Shown here: positions 3,027-32,500 of the stretch, piece after piece
Layout of the letters: each line of letters starts with the position of its first letter
Numbering within the stretch: the stretch's first letter is position 1
NCBI GenBank assembly: GCA_003693705.1
Contig: RBZT01000597.1
Coordinates: 1 to 45,194, forward strand
Direction of reading: 5' to 3'
Length of the DNA stretch: 45,194 nt
DNA from: Polymyxa betae A26-41
Taxonomy: Eukaryota; Protista; Endomyxa: Phytomyxea
Position numbers and translations under genes: made by a program
The notes under the pieces: generated by a model
Databases searched by the model: none
Told to the model about the DNA's origin: nothing
The model's input: the letters and a program-made list of their open reading frames with translations, nothing else

Positions 3027-4436
3027 ATGACAAAGAAGGAGTTTATTTGGACAGTACAAAGTCCTTGAAGGGATCTACAGGATGCAGAAAAGCGTGTTGC
3101 AGAGAAAACGAGATGGATCGAACCTGAACATTACTTGAAGAGGCTTGCTCTCTTATCGTCTTTCTTTTCGTCTTTCTTCTTGTCATCCTTCTTCTCGTCC
3201 TTCTGGGAACAGACAGAAGATATCCAAGGTTATCCATAACAGGCAAATCGTCACAAGCGCAATGGAGACCCTATTGTTTGCATTCCATTCTAATCTCAGC
3301 TATATCGAAACAACACTTCCTAACAACATGAGCAGGCAAAATGACATTCCGGTGTCTGCGTCGTTCAATGCAACGAGAAAAAATGCCAGCGGTATCAGAG
3401 CTCAGGTTTGAAAGTGGGCGGGACATTGGTGCCAGCAGAGGCTGCCTGATGATCGAGTGACAACTGCTATCAAGTATCATATGCTTACGAAGTCGCTGCT
3501 CATTCATAACAATGATGCTGTGGTCAGTGCTGGCTCATTGCGACATCATTGACAATTGGGTGGCGACGAACAAGAAAGCGTCGTCTCGCAGATCAAAAGA
3601 TCTTCAACATTCGAATATCGCCAGGAACATTCCGATCGTATTTTACAAAGAGATGCTTGACGGTTTCTTACTCATGAAAACTTTTCCCGGAACGACATTT
3701 TTTGACAGATTTGGCAAATTTTTGCCTATCACCGCATGTTCTAATGAACTATCAGCCTGACTGCACTAGTTGACCAGAAGACTCTGGCAATATTGAAGAA
3801 CCGCTGGTAATTGCTGAAATCAATCTTGAAATGGAGATGACACAAGTTGGAGAGTAGAAGAGCTTCCGTTGTTGTTCACTAGTAAACTGTTCCTATTTGG
3901 CTAATAAGCCTGTTCCTGCCAATGATTGATTCCAACAGAAAGTTCATGAGCCGAGTCTTCGCTCGAGTTCTCATATGTCATCAGCAAGGTGATCGTTCTT
4001 GACTGGGAATTCAAATTCTATAAGACAATAGTCAGTTTCGCTGAAGTTTGGAATATCGAACTGTTGATTCGCGGAAATTGGATTATTTCACCTGGGCATA
4101 TGGAATCGTATAGCGTTAATCTGGCAATGGTAAAGAGCGCGGTTGTTACCGCATCACAACATCTATTCGACAGGCAAGCATTGGTCTTTTAGAGAAGTTT
4201 GTTTAATGAGTCCGAGGTACAGTGATGGTTGATCCATCATGACGTAATTGCATCAAACCAAGATGGATGTGACACTCTCTTTAACACATGTGCAGTCATT
4301 CACGACGCTGCCATTGCTGGAGGCAGTTTCCGCGTCCAGAAAATCGCACGTACAACAATGCTTCTTTCCTATCGTAAACCGCTAAAGCGACGAACAGGCT
4401 ACGATTACATCGCATATAGTCGTCGATAACCAACAG
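3027..4436 (+). CDS. Probable short upstream exons, either the 5' part of the WD40 gene or a separate unknown gene
   Basis: Coding-like segments (QKISKVIHNRQ..., SFTTLPLLEAVSASRKSH) alternate with pyrimidine-rich GT..AG blocks. A CAG acceptor at 4436 joins in frame to the WD40 ORF, which lacks its own ATG. Exon boundaries are not resolved. Confidence 0.35.
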
Positions 4437-6305
4437 ACGTTGATCGCCGGCACCAGCTGCGGTGACATTCTCATCTGGAAATCAAGAAGATCATCGGCCT
4501 CGTCGCTCACCTCATTGCAAACCCAGATTCTATCTGGGCATCAAGGCCGAATCCATGCTCTGCTCTGCGTCGACTCCAAGTATCTGTTCAGCGCCAGCTC
4601 TGATCGCAACGTTCGTGTTTGGGCGCCCTGGGAGCCTGACTCCAGCCGGGCTCGAGTCCAAACCCTAATCGGCCATAGTGGCACTGTCACCTGTCTTGGA
4701 TGGTGCGGCCTCTCCCTAGTTACAGGCAGTACTGACAGGACCCTTCGTGTCTGGCGTCATGAAGGTCATCGTCATTTGCTTCTACACCCGGTCCTGGTCT
4801 GCGTCCAGACACTAGGCCCATTTAACCACTGGATCACGTCGTTGGATGTCCGCCCAAGCACCGATCCGCCGTCGCTGTTCGCGGCCGACGGCAACGGCAC
4901 CATCCATGTGTTCTCGGTAGGCGCCAGCGGCCTACGACAGGTTCGCAAGCAGCATCTTCACTCGCGTTCAATCTCGAAAGTATTCCTGGTCCCGCACGAG
5001 AACCTTCTTATCTCGCTCTCGTATGATTGCACGCTGCAAGTACACGACGCCAACACGGGCACCGGCCTATTCGCGGTCGAAAACCCGAATCGATGCAGAT
5101 ATACGGGCGTGGCGTGGGACGGGCCAAGAAAGGATCTGGTAGTCGTCGACGCCCTCGGCTATTTTCAAATTTGGAACATTTTCGCCGAACGCTGCTTGAA
5201 AGTGCAACGGCTACGTCGTGGAGAACTCTCTGGCGTCGTCTGCCATCACGACGCAGTCGTCGTCAGCGCACCAGAATGCATTGAGATCTGGAACGTGACT
5301 CGAGCTAGCCACTCTCGTGATCATTCAGCACATACTAGCGTCGTTGTCGGCCTTGTCCGCGGCGTTGATGGCCTGCTTTGGTCGGCATCGGTTGACAACA
5401 CCATTCGGGCCTGGAATGATACCATGTCGTGTGTTACGACACTGCGCGACGATGTTAGCGAGATCAGCGCCTTCGGGCAGATTCCCGAGACCAACCTGCT
5501 CATTACCGGGCTGGATAACGGAGACGTTCATGTTTGGAACTCGGATACGGGCAGCGCCCTGACCCTGTATGGTCACACGAATGCAGTCACGTCGATTATC
5601 GTGGCGCGATCGCATCGTCGCGAATTGCTCGTCACCGGATCGTTCGATGCTCGAGTATTAATCTGGGACGTCACCAGGCGGAAGACATCAACGATCGTGC
5701 CGGCGCTAGAGCATGAGCTAGTTCGGCATCCAGATGCGAAAGAAGTGCTCTGCGTCGCACATAATGTATCGAACGGGATGGTGCTGGCCGGCGGCAACGA
5801 CGGCGTCGTTCAGATCTGGGATCTGGAGACATACGAAGGACGCGGTTTGCTGGTTGGGCATCGCGATGCTGTAATTGGGCTGGCGTTCGATGGAAACCTG
5901 GTACTGACGGCCAGCAATGACGGCGATATCCGTATTTGGGACGCAATCAATCGGCAATGCCTCGATATTTTGGAAAGCAAACCGCCGGTCAGGAGCTTGG
6001 TGTTCGCCGAAGGTCTCGTGATCGCATCATACGGCGACGGCAACGTCCAGCTATGGGATTACGTCAAGCGAGCTGTGAAGCTCGCTTGGAGAATTCCAAA
6101 CGATGCTGAGCCGCGATCTATGCTGGTGGAATCGGGACAGGTTATAATTGGGTCGGAGAACGGCACGATCACTGTTTTTAGTATTCCGGATGGTGATCGG
6201 GATTCTGACGACGTGGACTCATTTAAATTAGATGTTGAAGGGCTACTTCCAGGAATCTCTGATGACAGACAGTATACCGTGTTGCATAATCTAGCAAGCT
6301 TATAA
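4437..6305 (+). CDS. Multi-WD40 repeat (probable double beta-propeller) protein, large terminal exon
   Basis: Many GH...WD-type repeats (LSGHQGRIHAL...SASSDRNVRVW, LIGHSGTVTCL...TGSTDRTLRVW, LYGHTNAVTS...TGSFDARVLIWD, LVGHRDAV...TASNDGDIRIWD). Confidence 0.9.
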   Translation, partial: TLIAGTSCGDILIWKSRRSSASSLTSLQTQILSGHQGRIHALLCVDSKYLFSASSDRNVRVWAPWEPDSSRARVQTLIGHSGTVTCLGWCGLSLVTGSTDRTLRVWRHEGHRHLLLHPVLVCVQTLGPFNHWITSLDVRPSTDPPSLFAADGNGTIHVFSVGASGLRQVRKQHLHSRSISKVFLVPHENLLISLSYDCTLQVHDANTGTGLFAVENPNRCRYTGVAWDGPRKDLVVVDALGYFQIWNIFAERCLKVQRLRRGELSGVVCHHDAVVVSAPECIEIWNVTRASHSRDHSAHTSVVVGLVRGVDGLLWSASVDNTIRAWNDTMSCVTTLRDDVSEISAFGQIPETNLLITGLDNGDVHVWNSDTGSALTLYGHTNAVTSIIVARSHRRELLVTGSFDARVLIWDVTRRKTSTIVPALEHELVRHPDAKEVLCVAHNVSNGMVLAGGNDGVVQIWDLETYEGRGLLVGHRDAVIGLAFDGNLVLTASNDGDIRIWDAINRQCLDILESKPPVRSLVFAEGLVIASYGDGNVQLWDYVKRAVKLAWRIPNDAEPRSMLVESGQVIIGSENGTITVFSIPDGDRDSDDVDSFKLDVEGLLPGISDDRQYTVLHNLASL

Positions 6306-24196: not shown

Positions 24197-24594
24197 ATTA
24201 ACGAGTAATAAATAGTGTATTTAAATTGGGATATCAGCAAGATTGTCGCTGATGTCGTTAGCTACAGATAATATAACGTCTCTGCATAGGGTTATGATCA
24301 TACAGAGATCGTGAATCTTTCCGAATTGCTGCATTCTCACAGAGCCCGACGACTAGTAGAGAAAGCCTTAAATGAACTGGAATCATGAAGAGCTATGATG
24401 GTTTACCTTAGGATGTGGAATCCATTGCAGCCCACCACGATCAATTCTAATCATGGACATCCCGCTTGAATGAATATACTGGATCGGGAGCCTAAACAGC
24501 GAAATATTCCATGAGCACATTGCGAACGTTTCTGAATAAAACACCAAGTTGTAAACACAGAAAGCAATTCGGACGAATATCGAAAGCTATGGGG

Positions 24595-27500
24595 TTACGT
24601 TAGCGCCGTATCTAACACGTATTCGAATTTCGGCAGGGTCAGGTACGACCGAACAGCGACGATCATGGCTTGCGTGGGCAACGAGATCGGGATCACGGGC
24701 TGGAACGGCGAGGTAGACGACGACAGGAGCGCGCCCGGATTCCGCGGCTGATAATGACAGGCTGGCAGCTGCCGACCGATATCAATGGGCATCGTCCGAC
24801 AGCCTCAGGACAGCGTTTACCTGAAGCAAGGCGATCTGCGTATCTTTCGCCGTCGGGCGCAGGACGTTCTCGATCCAGCGGCGCATACTGGCCCCGGTCG
24901 CCATCATCCACCGTACTGGATCAACATTGGGTCAGGTTCGTGCTGGTTCGAAGGAGTTCGTTACGTTCGATGTGGAAACAGGCGCTCTCGTCGACCACGG
25001 AATCGTAGTAAGCGCTGAACGATTGGTAGCGGTCGGCGTCGTCGACGAACCCGATGTCGATGTTGACGAACGCGTCCAGCGTGCCGGCCCCGAGCGGCTC
25101 CGGGATCTGCGAGACCCAACGCAGATTCAGGTCGGTGACGTCGCGGCCCAGCAGCGTCTGCAGGAACGTCGTCAGGCGCTCGACGTCCTGGACGCGCCCG
25201 TCCGCCAGCGACGTCGCACTGATCAGCGCGAACCTGCACCCCACCGTCAGTAACATAAATGTCGCATGACGTTACATGACGGGCGTAACGTCAATGCAGG
25301 AAACGTGACATACCGAAAGCGACGGTAGTTAAGGTTGGGTCCGGAAAGTGCGTCGACGTGGCCGGCCACGAGCTGGTCCGCGTAGTTCCAGTTAAATGGC
25401 GCATCCGTGGCACGGATCAGAGCGTCAATCGGTAACAGGGCCGCACACGCATCACTCCACAGGAAATAACGATACGGGAACGCCGGCTGCATGCCGAACA
25501 ACGTTACACTGTGTAACGTTGTGACACCGTGCTATGACCGACCTGATTGCCAGTGCTCCAGGGGGAGTCGTGCGTCACATTCGACAGGCGGAAATACCGA
25601 TGAACCTTCACAGGACACGTTACGCAGACACAGGGTAGCGCACGCAGACGTCACGGACCTGGATATTGTCCGTGGATCGGTCCAGTATGACCTGGTGATG
25701 ATCGCTGCCGAGTGACAGCTGGTAGAGGATGGATTGCCCCGGACCTGGCGAATGCCGTGTCGGAGCGACCATCAGCTGGAAATCGTTCGTCAGACGTTGT
25801 GTGATCAACTCCGTGAGCAGGTTCTCGGCTCTGTTCGTGGGTAACGTTATCACAAGGGGGTGCCACCAGTCTATACGTTACCTATCATGATAGCGCCGGT
25901 CATTTGGCACAAGCGACAGAGTCTGGACCGTATTGCGGAACTCCTTCTGTAGCTGGTCCAGATGCGGGAAATAGTCCGTGGTCAGGGGCAGTACGGCCGG
26001 CGTGCACAGCGACTTGAGATCGAGTTGGGTGAGTGGCTCCTCTACTGACAAGCTCACGATTAGAGAAGGGTTGCTGCGGCACGGAGTCCGTGGCGGCAAT
26101 GGACGTCACGGACCTTGTTTCGGGAACAGATGCACCCAGCGACGACGATTATTGGCCAACTTCGGGGTCGAACTCTGACACAGCCCTCATCAGAACCCGC
26201 GGATCGTAACGTAATCCGGGGGCGTAACATAAATATGAAACGTAATAGGGGTAACGTAAAATGTGCGAAGGCGAATGAGTGAAATGTAATCAAAAAGGTA
26301 ACGTAATCAAAGTCACATAGCGTAAAATATGCGACGGCGAATGCGTGTTACATGGAGCCTGAATGGGTTGGGCTCTGTGGCGATCCCGCCCAAGTCGGAG
26401 CCCGGGGACGATACGGACGCGGTCAGCGGGGCCGTGTACGACTCCACGAGGATCGGTCGTGATTGGTCGTCGTGCTGGACCTCGAACAGGACTTGGTGAC
26501 GGCCGACGCCTACGTCCGTGGTTGTCAGTGACGGACAATGATGGGCGCAGGTCGCCACGGACCTGCGGAGCCTGATCGGCTCGGTGTGGGTGTGCTGGAG
26601 TCGAGCCGGATCTTGGACGCGGCCGCGGACATAGTGGCGGACACCGCCGGCGAAAATGACGACGGCGCCGGTGGCGATGCCCATCGTTTCGGGACGAGAT
26701 CGGTCGGGGATCCGGAGCTCACTTGACGCTGCTGCGGAATGCGGAACTCCGACTGTGCCAATATCGTTTCACGTTACATTATGTTACGAAATCGTGAACA
26801 ATCATCGTTACGCGATGATCCAATGCGGACATGGAGACAGTCTTGGTCAGCGATGTCGGATGATACCGGACAGGACGCACGGACTCCGTGGGTCCGGGCA
26901 GCTGTGGCGACGCCGACAGTGACGGGACGATCTGGCCCAGCGACGGAAACGATCCCGAGTGCGCAATGTAACGAATCGGTGAGCGTAACGCCTCGGACTC
27001 CGAAAGGCAGGGACCTTCCCCGCACTGGAACACGTCGCTGTCGTACTGGTCGTAATAAGCCGGATTTAGCTCCTAGAAATCCAGTTAAGAGAAACCTGTA
27101 GCCCGGAAACCCTAAACCCTACTAGAATCGAGATCGAATCGGAGAGGGTCGGAGTCACGGGGTACACGACAGAGTTCGACGCAAAGGCCCAGTCCGGGTC
27201 GGACTGCGACGATGGGAACATTCGACAGAGAGGGATCGGGCCGAATCCATCACCGCCCTTCTCGCCCTACAAGCGGTATCGGCATTGGCAAGGTAAACGG
27301 CAACGTAAAACAGGTATCAGAAAAACAAGGTAACGTAAGAACCCTAACTGACCCAGTGCGAATCCCGTCCGGGTTCGGCCCAGAACTTCATCCCGAGCCA
27401 GTCGTCGGCGATACTGTATCGCGGCTGTGCCCTGTAACATAATGCGATGAGGTGATCGCCGCAGGTGTGTAACGTTTACGTACAGGGAGGGGGCGGTCTC

Positions 27501-29364
27501 CTGAACGTTATAGACGAAGAGCGGGACAGCATGGAGGGGAGGCCGCGCCATCGAGATCAGATCGCAGCCGATCCCGTTATCCACCATTCGTTCCTTGGTG
27601 AGTTCCAGCAGCCGAGGGTCCACAGTCCAGACACCTGACGCAACGTTACCCAACCGACGTGGCCATTCAGAGTGGTGACACGTTACCGGTGCCGGCCGTG
27701 ACGACCACGACGGCCTGCGCGGTCCGATGCAAGTCGCGATCCACGAAGTGTTTGTCGAAGGCGTTGGCGGCCAGGTTGATCGCCTCCAATACGTTACCGT
27801 CCGTGGCCGAGCACGGCACGCCCTGTAACGTGTCAGTCAACCCCCAGGCGTATCGTAAGAAAAACTGAACGGACTTTCAGGCCGGAGATGGGGTCCAGGG
27901 CGCCCCAGCGCAGCTCCTGGCTGAACCGGTTGATGCCCCGGATCAGCAGCGAACGTAACGTGGCCCAGTCGCGTCGCGACTCGCCCTCGAACACCAACTG
28001 TAACGTGATCAGCGAGTCGATCAGCACGCACGACCCCGAGACCAAGCGACCTTATAATAGTCCTGGTACAGGCGCTGCTGAGCATCGGTCTGGAACACGT
28101 TCGAGACGTCCGCCAACAACCTGCAACGATAACCGATTTGGTGTAACGTATAAAGTAAGGGAAAATCACTTGGCAACGTAAACCATTGGAAACGAAATCG
28201 AACAAAGAAGAATGAATGCGTTGACATAAACGTCGTTACGTCTGTTCGGAGTGGGCGACGGCGGGTTTCGGACCCCAGATGGGGGCGCGGGCCTCGATCG
28301 GCACGAAGAAGGTCCGCGCGAACAGCACGATTCTCAAGCTGTGATTGACGCCCAGCTTCTGCCATTGCTGGAACACGAACTGTGTAACAACAACAACACA
28401 GGTCGGTTTCGGTTACAGTCAACCGATGCCACGTTACTTTGAAGAGTCCATTGACGAGATTCTCCTCATACAGCTGCCCATCATCATCATAATCCCACAT
28501 CTCTTTGCTCAGCTGAATCAACCAGGTGATCTTCGCAGATCGAGACCGATACACGAGCTTGGTGGCGGCCGTGATCTGTCCGCACAGCATCGCCTGACCC
28601 CATCATCAGTAACGTAACATCCTGACACCAGCTAGCTACGTTACCTTGCCATTGACAAGAAGTTCATCAGCGCGGGCCGTGATGCCCATCGCTGTGATCG
28701 TCTTGGTAGAATAGACACAGGACCCCGTCAAGTCCTGTTTCAGGCGCCACATGTCACCCCTAAAACCCTAAAAACCCTAAACCCTAGACAAAGGGTTTCG
28801 TTTTACCGCGAGATGTACTGGTCGCTGAAGCTAAGCTGAAGGAAGTCGAGAGCGACGATCCCGTCGGCGGTCAGGATACGGACCACGACCTGGCAGCGAT
28901 TCTTCAATTCGAATAGATCCGCGATTCCCTTCCGGATGCTAATCTGCACATTCCCTGCAACAAACCGGCGTAAAAATACGAAATAAAATAATAAAAAACT
29001 TGAAAAGAAAAAACAAATCAAAGAAACAGGAGACGGGCGACCCTTCACGGGATTGAGTTCGGTGATGCGCGTCTGTAGTCGGGGCGCATCCGGTCCCCGT
29101 TCGGCATCGGAGATGGCGATCAGGTCGCCAATACGCAAACCCGGGAACGATTCCGGGTTCAGGCAGATCTCAGCCCGGCTCGATCGGAAACGCTCCTCGT
29201 GGACGACCTAACAAAAGTCACGGTCGGCGCCCCGCGTTCCAGTACGACCCGCCATCACCGACCAGGGTCCGGGTATAGGTACGCGCGTCATAATGGTCGC
29301 CGCCGCGATCCGACCCGGGCTGGTCGCGCTGCCGCCACCGACCGACGCGGCGTTGTCCGGCCAT
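24595..29364 (-). CDS. DEPDC5: GATOR1/SEACIT subunit DEPDC5/Iml1, ~22 introns
   Basis: Spliced frame gives [155 protein letters not shown]. Confidence 0.95.
28760..28786 (-). repeat. Interstitial telomere-type repeats (TAGGG TTTAGGG TTTTTAGGG TTTTAG on minus strand) inside a 47-nt DEPDC5 intron
   Basis: Plus strand reads CTAAAACCCTAAAAACCCTAAACCCTA. Confidence 0.85.
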
Positions 29365-29537
29365 CGCCGTCGACGACTCCGGAGGACGCTATAAAGGCGC
29401 TCGCAGTTGCGCGCAATGACTACAATGATGGAACAAGACGAAGACGAATGCAAGGGCCAGCATGCCGGCAGGAATATTATTAGTCAGGTTGGTTACATAG
29501 TTTGTGGAATCGGACGGCCACCTCGGGAGCGATTCTT

Positions 29538-32500
29538 TCAGGAGGTCTGCGAGATCTGACGCAGCATGTCTTTGGTGTAATCGAGACGGCGGCGGAAATC
29601 GTCGCGATCGCGGTCGTGACAACCTTGATCGATATGGCACAGATAGGCGGCGTTGTTCTGCAACGAAGACTCAATACCGAATTTGATACCGATAATGGGA
29701 TTGTCAATAAGGTCATCGACAATCAAAACGCAATATCATAGATCGATTTCTCCCTTTGAATGAAACTTTTGGTTACAAAAAATGACGAAATGAAAATGGA
29801 AAACCACTCGATCGCGACACTTTCAATCCAGACGCGAGAATTCATAGAGAACTGCGAAAACCGATGCAGCCACCAAACTTTAACAAACCTTATCGGTGAA
29901 TCTGACGATCCTGTCTGAGTTGATGACCAATTCTGAGCGATCAGCAAACAGAACCTAAAAATCGCCAGTCAGTTTGCAAAGCTTGACTATCACTAATTGA
30001 TGCCGACCTGCACGACACCGTTGCTCAATGCAAACAGAATCGATCGTTTCGTAGTGGCCCATTTCTTGGCATACACTGAAATCATAATTAAATAAAAAAC
30101 AAACAGACCATATTGATTAAAGCTAACAATGGGGCTCATATAAACAATCATCTCTTCAAAAGTGGATCTAATGAGGGTAAGCAGAGAAAAAACGACAGAC
30201 CTAGATCTGATCCCTTCGTTGACTTGAACGACAGCTGTATTCCGGCCGTGATATGTTTCTGGAAATGATTCAGCAATGTGACCTTCTTCTGGAGCCCGGC
30301 AGGATCGTATTTTCGTTTCGGATCGTAATGCGACGCCTGTCCGATTTCCGAATGACGCTCATAATATACAAATATGCTGCATGGCGAAACTCAATACAGC
30401 AGCAAATCGCGAAAAATGCCAGAAGCTAGAAATCTTCCCAGGCCTTCATTTTCTTTCAGAAAAGTCGAGAGGTAAGCTCAGTAAAAAACTTCAACCGAAA
30501 AAACGAATACATCAAGACGTACGTGGAGGAGGGATTCAAAATGATTTTGGTTCCATCATTGAAATAGACGCCGACACCGCCCTCCGATGTCAAATACCCG
30601 ATCCCATATTTTTCCGAATAGTTCAGCGTTTTGATGATCGTGACGCAGTCCCTCCAGTGCAGCTTCTCGTTCTGATCTGCACCGGATCACATCAGCTCGA
30701 CCAGCGCTCATAATAAGAAAAACAGCAAAAACACAGCAATAAACAGAACCAAGGATCACAAATCGAGAAAAAACCTGCCGGGGCTGGCACGACCCTGAAA
30801 CTTTTGTCAATGGCTTTTTGCAGGTTATCGAACTGCTGCCGGATTTGAACGGCAAATTTGTCAACGAAGTTTTCCTGATCAGCGCTGCCGATTTGTCCAC
30901 CGCCTGTGATCCTGCAGCCAATCCTTTAGTTCAATGCCGAAGGCAACGCTGGTCGTACTGGTTCGCATCCGTTGTCGAGTTGAATGGATTCGACTTTAAC
31001 GCCGATAATGGCAACGATGTGGGGACATTCGACATAAAGAATAAATCTACAGTCAGGATTAAACTTGACGAAACTCTTGAAGGCAATAAAACAGAACCTA
31101 CGAGATCGGATCTGCCGTAACGTTGCCCTTCGATTCGGAAGTAGAACAAGCATGCGTGAGATGAGGTCCTTGGCAGCAGCTGAAATCGGGATCCGGCTCG
31201 GGTACTCGTAATTGTTGGCGCGAATTCGGGCGTACGTCTCCTTGATGTTTGACGTCTCGAACGGCGGATACCCTGATTTAGGCCATCAATCCCGAGATAT
31301 ACAAACAAAGGAAAATACGACAAGAAGAGGTTTAACAGACACAAATTAGAACAGAGACAGAAGCACAAGGTTGCAGACAGACCTACTAAGATGGTGTACA
31401 TGATGACGCCCAGACTCCAGATGTCGACCTCGAACGAATGACCGCTGGTGGAATTGTCGAGAATCTCCGGCGCTGAAGACGTCGTTAATGCCAGGCGATC
31501 AGCAACAAAAGATTCGTGAGCGAGTACCAATATAGTTGGGCGTCCCGCTGCAAATGAAAGAATCATGTCAGAACAAGCTGAATTAGAGGATGGAAAGTTT
31601 TCAATTGCTATGGCGGAAATAAGTGAAACAGTCGGAAGTGTGTTGACAAAAGTATCATTTTCGTGGAAAACTTTCTATAAAAATTGCGGTCTGAAAGCCA
31701 GAACGAACCAAATCGTGGTCTTTCGTTCATTTTCCTCTGATAGTCGAGCGGCCAGCCCGAAATCACCCATTTTCAGCCTCAGATTGTCATGAAGAAAAAG
31801 GTTGCCAAGTTTTAGGTCGCGATGAATCACGCGGTGCTGCCGAAGATACTCCAAGACATCCAGAATCTGAAGAATGAAGAATTGCGCTTCCTGCATTGAC
31901 AGCTCAGAATCAATTTGATAACGAAAATCAACCCGACAAGCAAGATATCGCACAACGTGACAAGAACAGGTTGCAGACAAACAGAGAACTATTCATGTAA
32001 GATCCATCAATGTGAAAGGCAAAATTCGAATAAACTTGATAAGAAAGAGGAAATGCATTCAAAGGAAACTGAAACAAAAAGATAAGATTGGATTAATTCA
32101 AAAATGCTTACAGGCTCGGTGAGGTTACCCCTCACTTTCAGCATCTCTGATAAGGTCTGATACTTGCACCTCTCTAAGAGAATATACACGTTCTCATGGT
32201 CCTCTGTAAGATGGCGTCAGAACAGGACGTCTTTAGACCCAGCTCTCAAACCGACCGAAGAAGTGGTGAAATTTGACGATGCCGTCGTGTTGCAGATTGC
32301 GATGGATTCGGATTTCGTTCACCAACTGCAAATACATGGTGTGAGAATTGAAAAGCGAAAGCATGTGCTTCGAAATGGAGAGAATGATCAGCGATTGAGC
32401 TGCAGACTACGTGATCGCCAGCATGAACGAAACCAAGAAAGCCAATTTGAAAAAAGTTCGAATGAAAAGCTTGCTAAAGGCAAGAAACCCGGATTCACGA

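Follow-up and report, generated by a model that had tools for sequence, protein, structure and literature searches.

An intronic GTAACG/CGTTAC word overlaid on splice signals at ancestral intron positions in the Iml1/DEPDC5 gene of Polymyxa betae

Why should the introns of one gene be saturated with a single short word that also builds their splice sites? The question was raised by a 45,194-nt stretch of the Polymyxa betae A26-41 genome (contig RBZT01000597.1, positions 1 to 45,194; hereafter, the window), in which a sequence-only reading had counted 35-37 GTAAC/GTTAC pentamers, against ~8 expected, between positions 24590 and 28650. The region is enclosed by a minus-strand gene (24222-29361) encoding the GATOR1 subunit Iml1/DEPDC5. 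We observed that the word GTAACG/CGTTAC is enriched in this gene and concentrated in its introns, overlaps their splice signals, sits mostly at ancestral intron positions, is absent from the corresponding introns of a relative, and clusters at the scale of genes across the genome. A selected word of gene bodies, read on DNA by a sequence-specific factor, is the explanation that we tentatively favor.

Enrichment of the word and its overlap with splice signals

The gene exceeds the word-rich region, with a start near 29361 and a stop codon near 24222, and its open frames encode the Pfam domains IML1_N and IML1. A Spongospora subterranea 'DEP domain-containing protein' could be aligned over the full gene length, and the best protein matches mark the encoded protein as plasmodiophorid-like. 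Spliced transcript-like contigs of at least 99% identity, taken from public runs of two studies, provided 16 listed GT..AG junctions over 24400-29400 as well as extra pieces and loose ends. The remaining introns were placed by reading frame and homology, and phases were mutually consistent in all 21 exons checked. The resulting model has 24 introns, all GT..AG with donors of GTAAC, GTAAAC, GTCCGT or other types; their median length is 53 nt and their GC content ~49%, compared to ~60% in the exons. Transcripts were mostly fully spliced, and contig depth was unfit for ranking genes by expression. One transcript contig (X2 record 4, at 27874-28075) keeps the intron at 27998-28050 unspliced, pointing to some intron retention.

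A recount of the region gave 38 pentamers (21 GTAAC and 17 GTTAC) against a uniform expectation of 7.9, slightly more than first reported, and 95 in the whole window. Binned by kb, there were 8-10 pentamers at 25-29 kb, 6 at 10-11 kb and 0-3 nearly everywhere else, with a density of 1.4 per kb in the window outside the region. Of the 45 copies of the hexamer GTAACG/CGTTAC in the window, 28 fall in this region. Markov models fitted to the region's own sequence yielded 6.5±2.6 (order 1) and 13.4±3.7 (order 2) pentamers, and 2.4, 5.7 and 14.3±3.9 hexamers at orders 1 to 3; order 3 is uninformative for the pentamer, since it encodes the 5-mer by construction (31±5.6). The enrichment therefore persisted in the Markov check that the sequence-only reading had proposed, at orders 1-2 for the pentamer and 1-3 for the hexamer.

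Most copies are intronic, as had been described: 33 of the 38 pentamers lie within 1426 nt of intron, compared to five in ~2.7 kb of exon. The hexamer reaches 18.2 per kb in the gene's introns, versus 0.42 per kb elsewhere in the window and 0.36 per kb across the genome (9,732 copies in 27.09 Mb), making the region ~19 times and its introns ~50 times richer than the genome. In Plasmodiophora brassicae, each of the 9,730 genes is reported to contain ~4 introns, 60 bp in length (PMC4471660). If P. betae introns were similar and every genomic copy were intronic, the density would be at most ~4 per kb, so the enrichment is not a general property of introns. The adjacent PLK gene (29380-32300; 45% GC) has long, T-rich introns of ~50-230 nt with GTAAGC, GTTCGT and GTCTGT donors, and no copies of the word were found when these introns were read by eye, in agreement with the earlier description.

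Within the Iml1/DEPDC5 gene, the first 717 nt, including three introns (196 nt of intron), contain no words against 4.5 expected; from ~0.7 kb into the gene, the word continues to the 3' end. GC-richness was ruled out as the cause by GC-rich genes that lack the word. A CpG-island effect was ruled out as well, with no CpG depletion and observed/expected ratios of 0.8-1.5 across the window and 1.2-1.4 in the gene. The exons carry four sense GTTAC compared to 1.3 expected after synonymous shuffling (p 0.04). The Leu codon TTA is rare in this gene, accounting for 4 of 108 Leu codons, and three of the four lie inside GTTAC.

Two-thirds of the intronic copies (22/33) double as donor, branch-distance or acceptor signals, and the other 11 are free-standing. 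GTAAC serves as the donor in nine introns, and in seven of these it extends to GTAACG. The seven donors named in the sequence-only reading are all real (28644, 28437, 28239, 27686, 26351, 25881 and 24964), and 26811 and 24598 were added. Most GTAAC donors are supported by spliced transcript contigs and the rest by frame and homology. Seven other sense GTAAC are at branch distance, 10-37 nt upstream of an acceptor, and four or five of the introns concerned have no other branch-like sequence; among 22 introns, CTAAC was absent and CTGAC occurred four times. Four sense GTTAC make the acceptor (GTTACAG, GTTACACAG), including the three GTTACAG acceptors reported earlier (27998, 27823 and 27432), and two continue into TGAC or TGAT to form an extended branch site. 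The donor GTAACGTG and the acceptor-side CACGTTAC are, as had been noted, exact complements.

A GTAACG donor mismatches U1 at +5 and +6 unless its C bulges out, as it may. Variant U1 or U2 RNAs matching the word were ruled out: all six U1 copies start with the canonical ATACTTACCT, U2 has the canonical GTAGTA, and the two exact genome matches to a hypothetical variant 5' end belong to a duplicated gene segment. This segment, common to L035 and L036 (G000 C838 and C887), spans 300 bp at 90% identity, and its opposite strand has a donor-like GTAACG. U12-type introns, which have RTATCCTT donors and TCCTTAAC branch sites, were also ruled out, as all 24 introns are GT..AG with donors of other types.

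Intron positions and intron sequence compared with a relative

To compare the gene with a relative, the spliced protein was handled exon by exon: one exon served as the search query, and exons were compared singly. This one-exon search reached a genomic contig from a Logan assembly (L031; 57% GC) with an ortholog ~35-89% identical per exon; a metagenome scan using one exon found no relatives. Seventeen of the 24 introns are at the same position and phase in both genes. Six exons have identical lengths, including those of 156, 70, 123, 136 and 61 nt, and all other length differences are multiples of three, so the phases agree. Six introns (3, 17, 18, 22, 23 and 24; Table 1) are private to P. 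betae, although with a single relative compared they are unpolarised. The remaining one, intron 1, could be classed as neither shared nor private in position.

The word follows the old positions, with 29 of the 33 intronic copies in introns at shared positions and four in the six private introns. In the relative, the 17 introns are 47-60 nt long (927 nt in total) and contain no words; they use a mixture of donors (GTCAGT, GTTGGT, GTAAGC and GTATCT, among others) and have branch sites of the usual CTGAC/CTAAC form. By this comparison, the introns are old in place and length, and their sequence was rewritten in this lineage.

The sequence-only reading had proposed that the introns might be the decayed remains of introner-like elements bounded by terminal inverted repeats of GTAACG, which would have inserted as many new introns. 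Introners and introner-like elements occur in Micromonas, Aureococcus and dothideomycete fungi, and the P. betae gene resembles those systems in its many short introns, shared complementary end words and folds more stable than shuffled. The complementary donor and acceptor words, the 14-nt donor word common to two introns and the six lineage-specific introns, five of which start with GTAAC or GTAAAC, are what such an origin would leave. However, the idea fails because most positions are ancestral. In addition, no intron combines a GTAACGTG start with a CACGTTAC end, and the three CACGTTAC/TGTTAC acceptors go with GTC- or GTAC-type donors. The gene's introns are mutually alignable over 7-14 nt only, matches among them spanned just 14-34 nt, and no alignable multi-copy family emerged: the 12-nt donor word GTCCGTGACGTC, common to two introns, has 11 copies in the genome, which rules out a high-copy family behind it. 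Single introns also lack the anatomy of inverted repeats plus target duplication, and the relative has short introns without the word at the same sites. We found nothing relevant in the literature on this word in introns or on introners in plasmodiophorids. An introner origin is thus very improbable.

Table 1. Features of the P. betae Iml1/DEPDC5 gene, in window coordinates. HSP, high-scoring segment pair; RNA joint, junction in a spliced transcript contig.
Feature	Coordinates	Strand	Sequence features	Basis	Position compared with relative
Iml1/DEPDC5 gene	24222..29361	-	Pfam IML1_N + IML1	spliced transcript contigs, consistent phases, Spongospora homology	
intron 1	29208..29262	-	donor GTCGGT; without word	predicted: crude gene model + HSP break	
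intron 2	28947..29040	-	94 nt, T-rich; donor GTCGCC; without word	contig exon edge 29041	shared
intron 3	28760..28806	-	47 nt; donor GTAAAACG; telomere-type repeats; without GTWAC	frame	lineage-specific (relative's exon contiguous)
intron 4	28594..28644	-	donor GTAACGTA; tandem GTTACGTTAC into TGAT; fold z -3.3, donor predicted paired	X4 loose ends 28595, 28644	shared
intron 5	28380..28437	-	donor GTAACGTG; internal GTAACC; 3' end GTTACACAG	frame + homology	shared
intron 6	28121..28239	-	119 nt; donor GTAACGAC; internal ACGTTGCC + ACGTTACA	zero depth in X1, X4	flanking exon 70 nt in both
intron 7	27998..28050	-	donor GTCGCT; 3' end CACGTTACAG	required by frame shift 0 to 2	shared
exonic copy CACGTTACGTT	27951..27963	-	uses rare Leu codon TTA		
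intron 8	27823..27874	-	donor GTCCGT; branch site CTGAC; 3' end CACGTTACAG	RNA joint	shared
intron 9	27635..27686	-	donor GTAACGTG; sense GTAACGTT 12 nt upstream of acceptor	RNA joint	shared
intron 10	27432..27483	-	5' GTACGTAAACGTTAC; 3' TGTTACAG	RNA joint	phase as in relative's intron
intron 11	27267..27352	-	86 nt; donor GTCAGTTAGGGTT; internal TTACGTTACCTTG + ACGTTGCC	RNA joint	shared
intron 12	27073..27122	-	5' telomere-type GTAGGGTTTAGGGTTT; without GTWAC	RNA joint	shared
intron 13	26753..26811	-	donor GTAACGAT; two further sense GTAAC, one 22 nt from acceptor	RNA joint	shared
intron 14	26510..26562	-	5' GTCCGTGG, exact complement 4 nt from acceptor; without GTWAC	RNA joint	probably shared
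intron 15	26175..26351	-	longest, 177 nt; donor GTAACACG; four sense YGTTAC; internal direct repeat, 66-nt spacing	RNA joint	shared
intron 16	26045..26113	-	donor GTCCGTGACGTC; CACGGAC 15 nt downstream; branch site CTAAT; without GTWAC	RNA joint	shared; flanking exon 61 nt in both
intron 17	25831..25881	-	GTAACGTA ... AACGTTACC	RNA joint	lineage-specific (relative's coding contiguous)
intron 18	25606..25658	-	donor GTCCGTGACGTC; sense GTAACGTG 15 nt from acceptor	RNA joint	lineage-specific
intron 19	25487..25542	-	donor GTCGGT; 25-nt palindrome made of word; fold z -3.2	RNA joint	shared
intron 20	25234..25313	-	donor GTATGT; three words; GTTAC into TGAC (extended branch site)	contig piece end 25231, contig piece start 25312	shared
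intron 21	24916..24964	-	donor GTAACGAA; branch site CTGAC	RNA joint	shared
intron 22	24769..24820	-	donor GTAAACGC; without GTWAC	RNA joint	lineage-specific
intron 23	24492..24598	-	107 nt; donor GTAACCCC; within coding region	RNA joint	lineage-specific
intron 24	24353..24406	-	donor GTAAACCA; without word; outside 24590-28650	loose end 24407 maps to 24323-24352	lineage-specific

Several other features of these introns were recorded. Introns 16 and 18 share an identical 14-nt word over the exon-intron border (AG + GTCCGTGACGTC; 26102-26115 and 25647-25660) and are dissimilar downstream, and a third border word (26551-26564) matches it at 12 of 14 positions. The 3' end of intron 8 (27822-27835) and the 5' end of intron 9 (27676-27689) are complementary at 13 of 14 positions across a 136-nt exon, which such pairing, if it formed in RNA, would bracket. 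Telomere-type repeats (TTTAGGG-like, with the G strand in sense) are present in introns 3, 11 and 12, and AGGGTT reaches 6.1 per kb in the gene's introns compared to 0.45 per kb elsewhere. Intron 3 consists almost entirely of such repeats and is missing from the relative.

Clustering of the word in other genes

The sequence-only reading had asked whether genes rich in the word form domains. Genome-wide, we counted 559 triplets of GTWAC separated by gaps within 30 nt, versus ~50 expected under a Poisson model with a background density of 1.26 per kb. The window has four such triplets, each of them in the Iml1/DEPDC5 gene, and other rich genes have 3-5 each, a yield that suggests ~100-150 word-rich genes, or ~1% of genes. 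The 9-mer TTACGTTAC occurs 760 times in the genome compared to 538 for its reversed control, and over half of the first 100 listed copies lie less than 3 kb from another copy. In 200 kb of sequence around TTACGTTAC hits, the word is dense throughout stretches of 2-5 kb and drops to background levels beside them; this sample is small and biased, having been chosen via word hits, and the U1/U2 loci and the part of the window outside the gene served as unbiased background. The word is thus clustered gene by gene across the genome.

Introns of the other word-rich genes are predicted, with strands called by a crude home-made gene finder that recovered 11 of 20 real introns in the Iml1/DEPDC5 gene. 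One of its strand calls (L022) was wrong by Pfam, and its donors in neighbouring genes look spurious, so it was used for strand calls only. A Pfam search of open reading frames from these genes returned one PX domain only and no functional theme.

Dense copies of the word elsewhere take several forms. At L020 (G000 C17), positions 4200-5100 encode leucine-rich repeats with 14 GTTAC in 1 kb, mostly written in Asn-Val-Thr or Met-Leu-Pro codons. At L012 (G000 C81), dense copies at 3500-3740 run beyond a stop codon and into the spacer, either 3' untranslated or intergenic, between two convergent genes. An apparent long intron at L013 (G000 C7; 5040-5340) has a tandem duplication of ~125 bp packed with the word; the strand of this locus is uncertain, since its GTAACG...CGTTAC stretches can be read as introns on both strands. 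At L025 (G000 C83; 8766-8940), there is a minisatellite of 31-bp period with units starting GTTACACGATT, in AT-rich, poorly coding sequence. Telomere-type repeats recur in introns of other word-rich genes (L012 at ~2630-2670; L014 at ~5530 and 2250).

These patterns bear on whether the word could be a neutral by-product of local mutation or repair, such as quasi-palindrome template switching, snap-back end-joining synthesis, slippage or micro-conversion between introns, any of which might copy donor-like words, direct and inverted, wherever indels are tolerated. One clear spacing was found, of 5 nt, from tandem GTTACGTTAC copies (10 cases), and it fits such copying, as do the duplication in the longest intron, the word-bearing arrays at L013 and L025, the telomere-type repeats in the same introns and the inverted copies of two different donor words. 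On the other hand, local copying would spread arbitrary sequence, rather than one word through ~100-150 unlinked genes, and intron lengths are still ~53 nt, as in the relative. Copying also sits poorly with donors that have themselves converged on GTAACG and with the identical 14-nt donor word in two introns that are dissimilar downstream. Among one-base variants of ACGTTAC, ATGTTAC is by far the commonest, with 25 copies compared to three of ACATTAC, which CpG decay would generate as its mirror; such a strand-asymmetric spectrum is unlike CpG decay. The local mutation process suggested by the sequence-only reading is therefore disfavored, and we consider a neutral origin unlikely.

The word-rich genes could instead form a gene-scale mosaic, introgressed from a related lineage that has this intron dialect. 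Such a history would account for GC content, intron length and words that differ from those of neighbours, including the sharp contrast with PLK, and for a protein that is plasmodiophorid-like. It is nevertheless a poor candidate, less probable than local copying, because introns 1-3 of Iml1/DEPDC5 are themselves word-free, GC-rich genes with short introns but without the word exist, and no donor lineage is known. Introgression would also merely shift the question of what the word does.

Strand, pairing and the possible roles of the word

The recurrence of the word in ~1% of genes, its placement in ancestral introns of unchanged length, its use in every splice role and in both orientations, and its faint presence in codons argue for selection on the word itself, and against element insertion or a local copying process. 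In the explanation that we favor, GTAACG/CGTTAC (core TAACGT, general form GTWAC) would be a lineage-specific signal under selection, written into pre-existing introns of ~100-150 genes including Iml1/DEPDC5. Since introns of ~53 nt have almost no free sequence, the word would have been placed on top of splice signals, as donor GTAACG, branch-like GTAAC, GTTAC running into TGAC/TGAT, or acceptor GTTAC-AG, with other copies mostly oriented so as not to create a decoy donor. A sequence-specific factor would bind the double-stranded word (e.g., GTAACGTTAC), marking these genes along their transcribed body. Among the earlier proposals, a protein-binding or chromatin-marking array at unconstrained sites is thus the leading one. 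A signal read in RNA comes close behind it.

The argument for DNA had rested on strand symmetry. The 16:17 balance of intronic sense and antisense copies is present, but it is a composite of nine donors and seven branch-distance copies, and the remaining copies favor sense GTTAC. Outside donors, intronic copies number 17 sense GTTAC versus 7 GTAAC; in four genes of known strand, TTACGTTAC lies 17 times on the sense strand and three times on the other; and six word-rich genes, including L013 with its uncertain strand, have 121 sense GTTAC versus 81 GTAAC with donors counted. The step from symmetry to DNA is therefore weaker than had been stated, and an RNA-level reading is nearly as likely. Reading on DNA would account for the complementarity of donors and internal copies, and for the strand skew through avoidance of decoy donors.

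As an RNA signal, sense YGUUAC(C) would base-pair with the GUAACG donors or be recognized by an RNA-binding protein, so that 5' splice sites would be masked or looped and splicing or intron retention of the gene set tuned, as by a cluster of intronic splicing regulators. The internal word exactly complements the donor, at times including the AG of the exon (TTACGTTACCTT), and predicted pairing of intron nucleotides 1-6 was 0.60 compared to 0.43±0.05 in shuffled sequences (0/200), while the relative was at chance (0.40 versus 0.39). The mean fold z over 21 introns was -0.89. A second donor type, GTCCGTG(G), is followed within its own intron by an exact complement of 7-8 nt in two of four cases. 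The sense bias, the predominance of wobble-compatible variants (ATGTTAC over ACATTAC), the weak U1 match of GTAACG, which would leave donors open to regulation, and the single retained intron are also in keeping with RNA.

Other results do not indicate matched partners. When donors were exchanged among introns as a head-swap control, pairing remained at 0.53 (23/200), which was not significant, indicating that donor pairing stems from word density. Inverted neighbours were not in excess (42 inverted versus 55 direct, with 47 inverted expected), and donor type was uncoupled from internal YGTTAC (5/9 GTAAC-donor introns versus 6/13 others). These three results rule out a hairpin-specific arrangement. 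In addition, acceptor, branch-distance and exonic copies would be unnecessary for pairing, and transcripts are mostly fully spliced. We regard a signal read in RNA as possible, if somewhat less probable than one read on DNA.

Several observations weigh against the DNA explanation. We know of no factor that binds the word, and the promoter is not enriched in it. Exonic enrichment is weak (p 0.04), the sense bias requires the added assumption of decoy-donor avoidance, the GTCCGTG/CACGGAC pairs in two introns are left unexplained, and the variants ATGTTAC (25) and ACGTTGC (5:0 sense) are also compatible with wobble pairing in RNA.

Known systems offer partial likenesses to a word of gene bodies. 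Periodic An/Tn clusters (PATCs) of Caenorhabditis elegans are non-coding sequences that saturate introns in some genes only, with a proposed action on DNA or chromatin along the gene body; here, in contrast, a specific word of 6-10 nt replaces phased A/T runs, overlaps splice signals and shows no clear 10-11 bp phasing (vector strength 0.11-0.15 at 10-11 nt; n=196; random ~0.07). The plant intron-mediated enhancement (IME) motif TTNGATYTG is likewise a short, repeated, transcribed word that is tolerated in introns and can be written in synonymous codons, but it is concentrated at the 5' end, whereas here the first ~0.7 kb is word-free and the rest is filled. As with PATCs and IME, enrichment lies in the introns of a gene subset (18.2 versus 0.36-0.42 per kb). 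The yeast Mer1 enhancer and Nova YCAY clusters are similar in that an intronic word is specific to a set of genes, donors are weak and depart from the consensus, and the sense strand is favored; the P. betae word differs in forming donors, a branch-like site and acceptors, in having both orientations and exonic copies, and in having no known factor. Introns of the Ostreococcus outlier chromosome provide a precedent for a distinct intron style in part of a genome, beside ordinary introns and with one spliceosome, although here the unit is a single gene and the style is one word.

Collectively, these findings separate the age of an intron's position from the age of its sequence, which are usually confounded, and suggest that splice signals can be recoded wholesale at fixed intron positions in one genus-level lineage, which would be a natural experiment on the freedom of the spliceosome. 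For annotation, GTAACG donors and GTTACAG acceptors in word-rich genes defeat generic splice models. We speculate that the word is a lineage-private code of gene bodies marking ~1% of genes, through which a dedicated factor, acting on DNA or pre-mRNA, might switch these genes together, e.g., when the parasite passes from one life stage to another. The word-rich set includes the TORC1 regulator Iml1/DEPDC5 and an ABC transporter, and if the word does mark co-regulated genes, it would provide a sequence handle on regulation in an unculturable, virus-transmitting root parasite.

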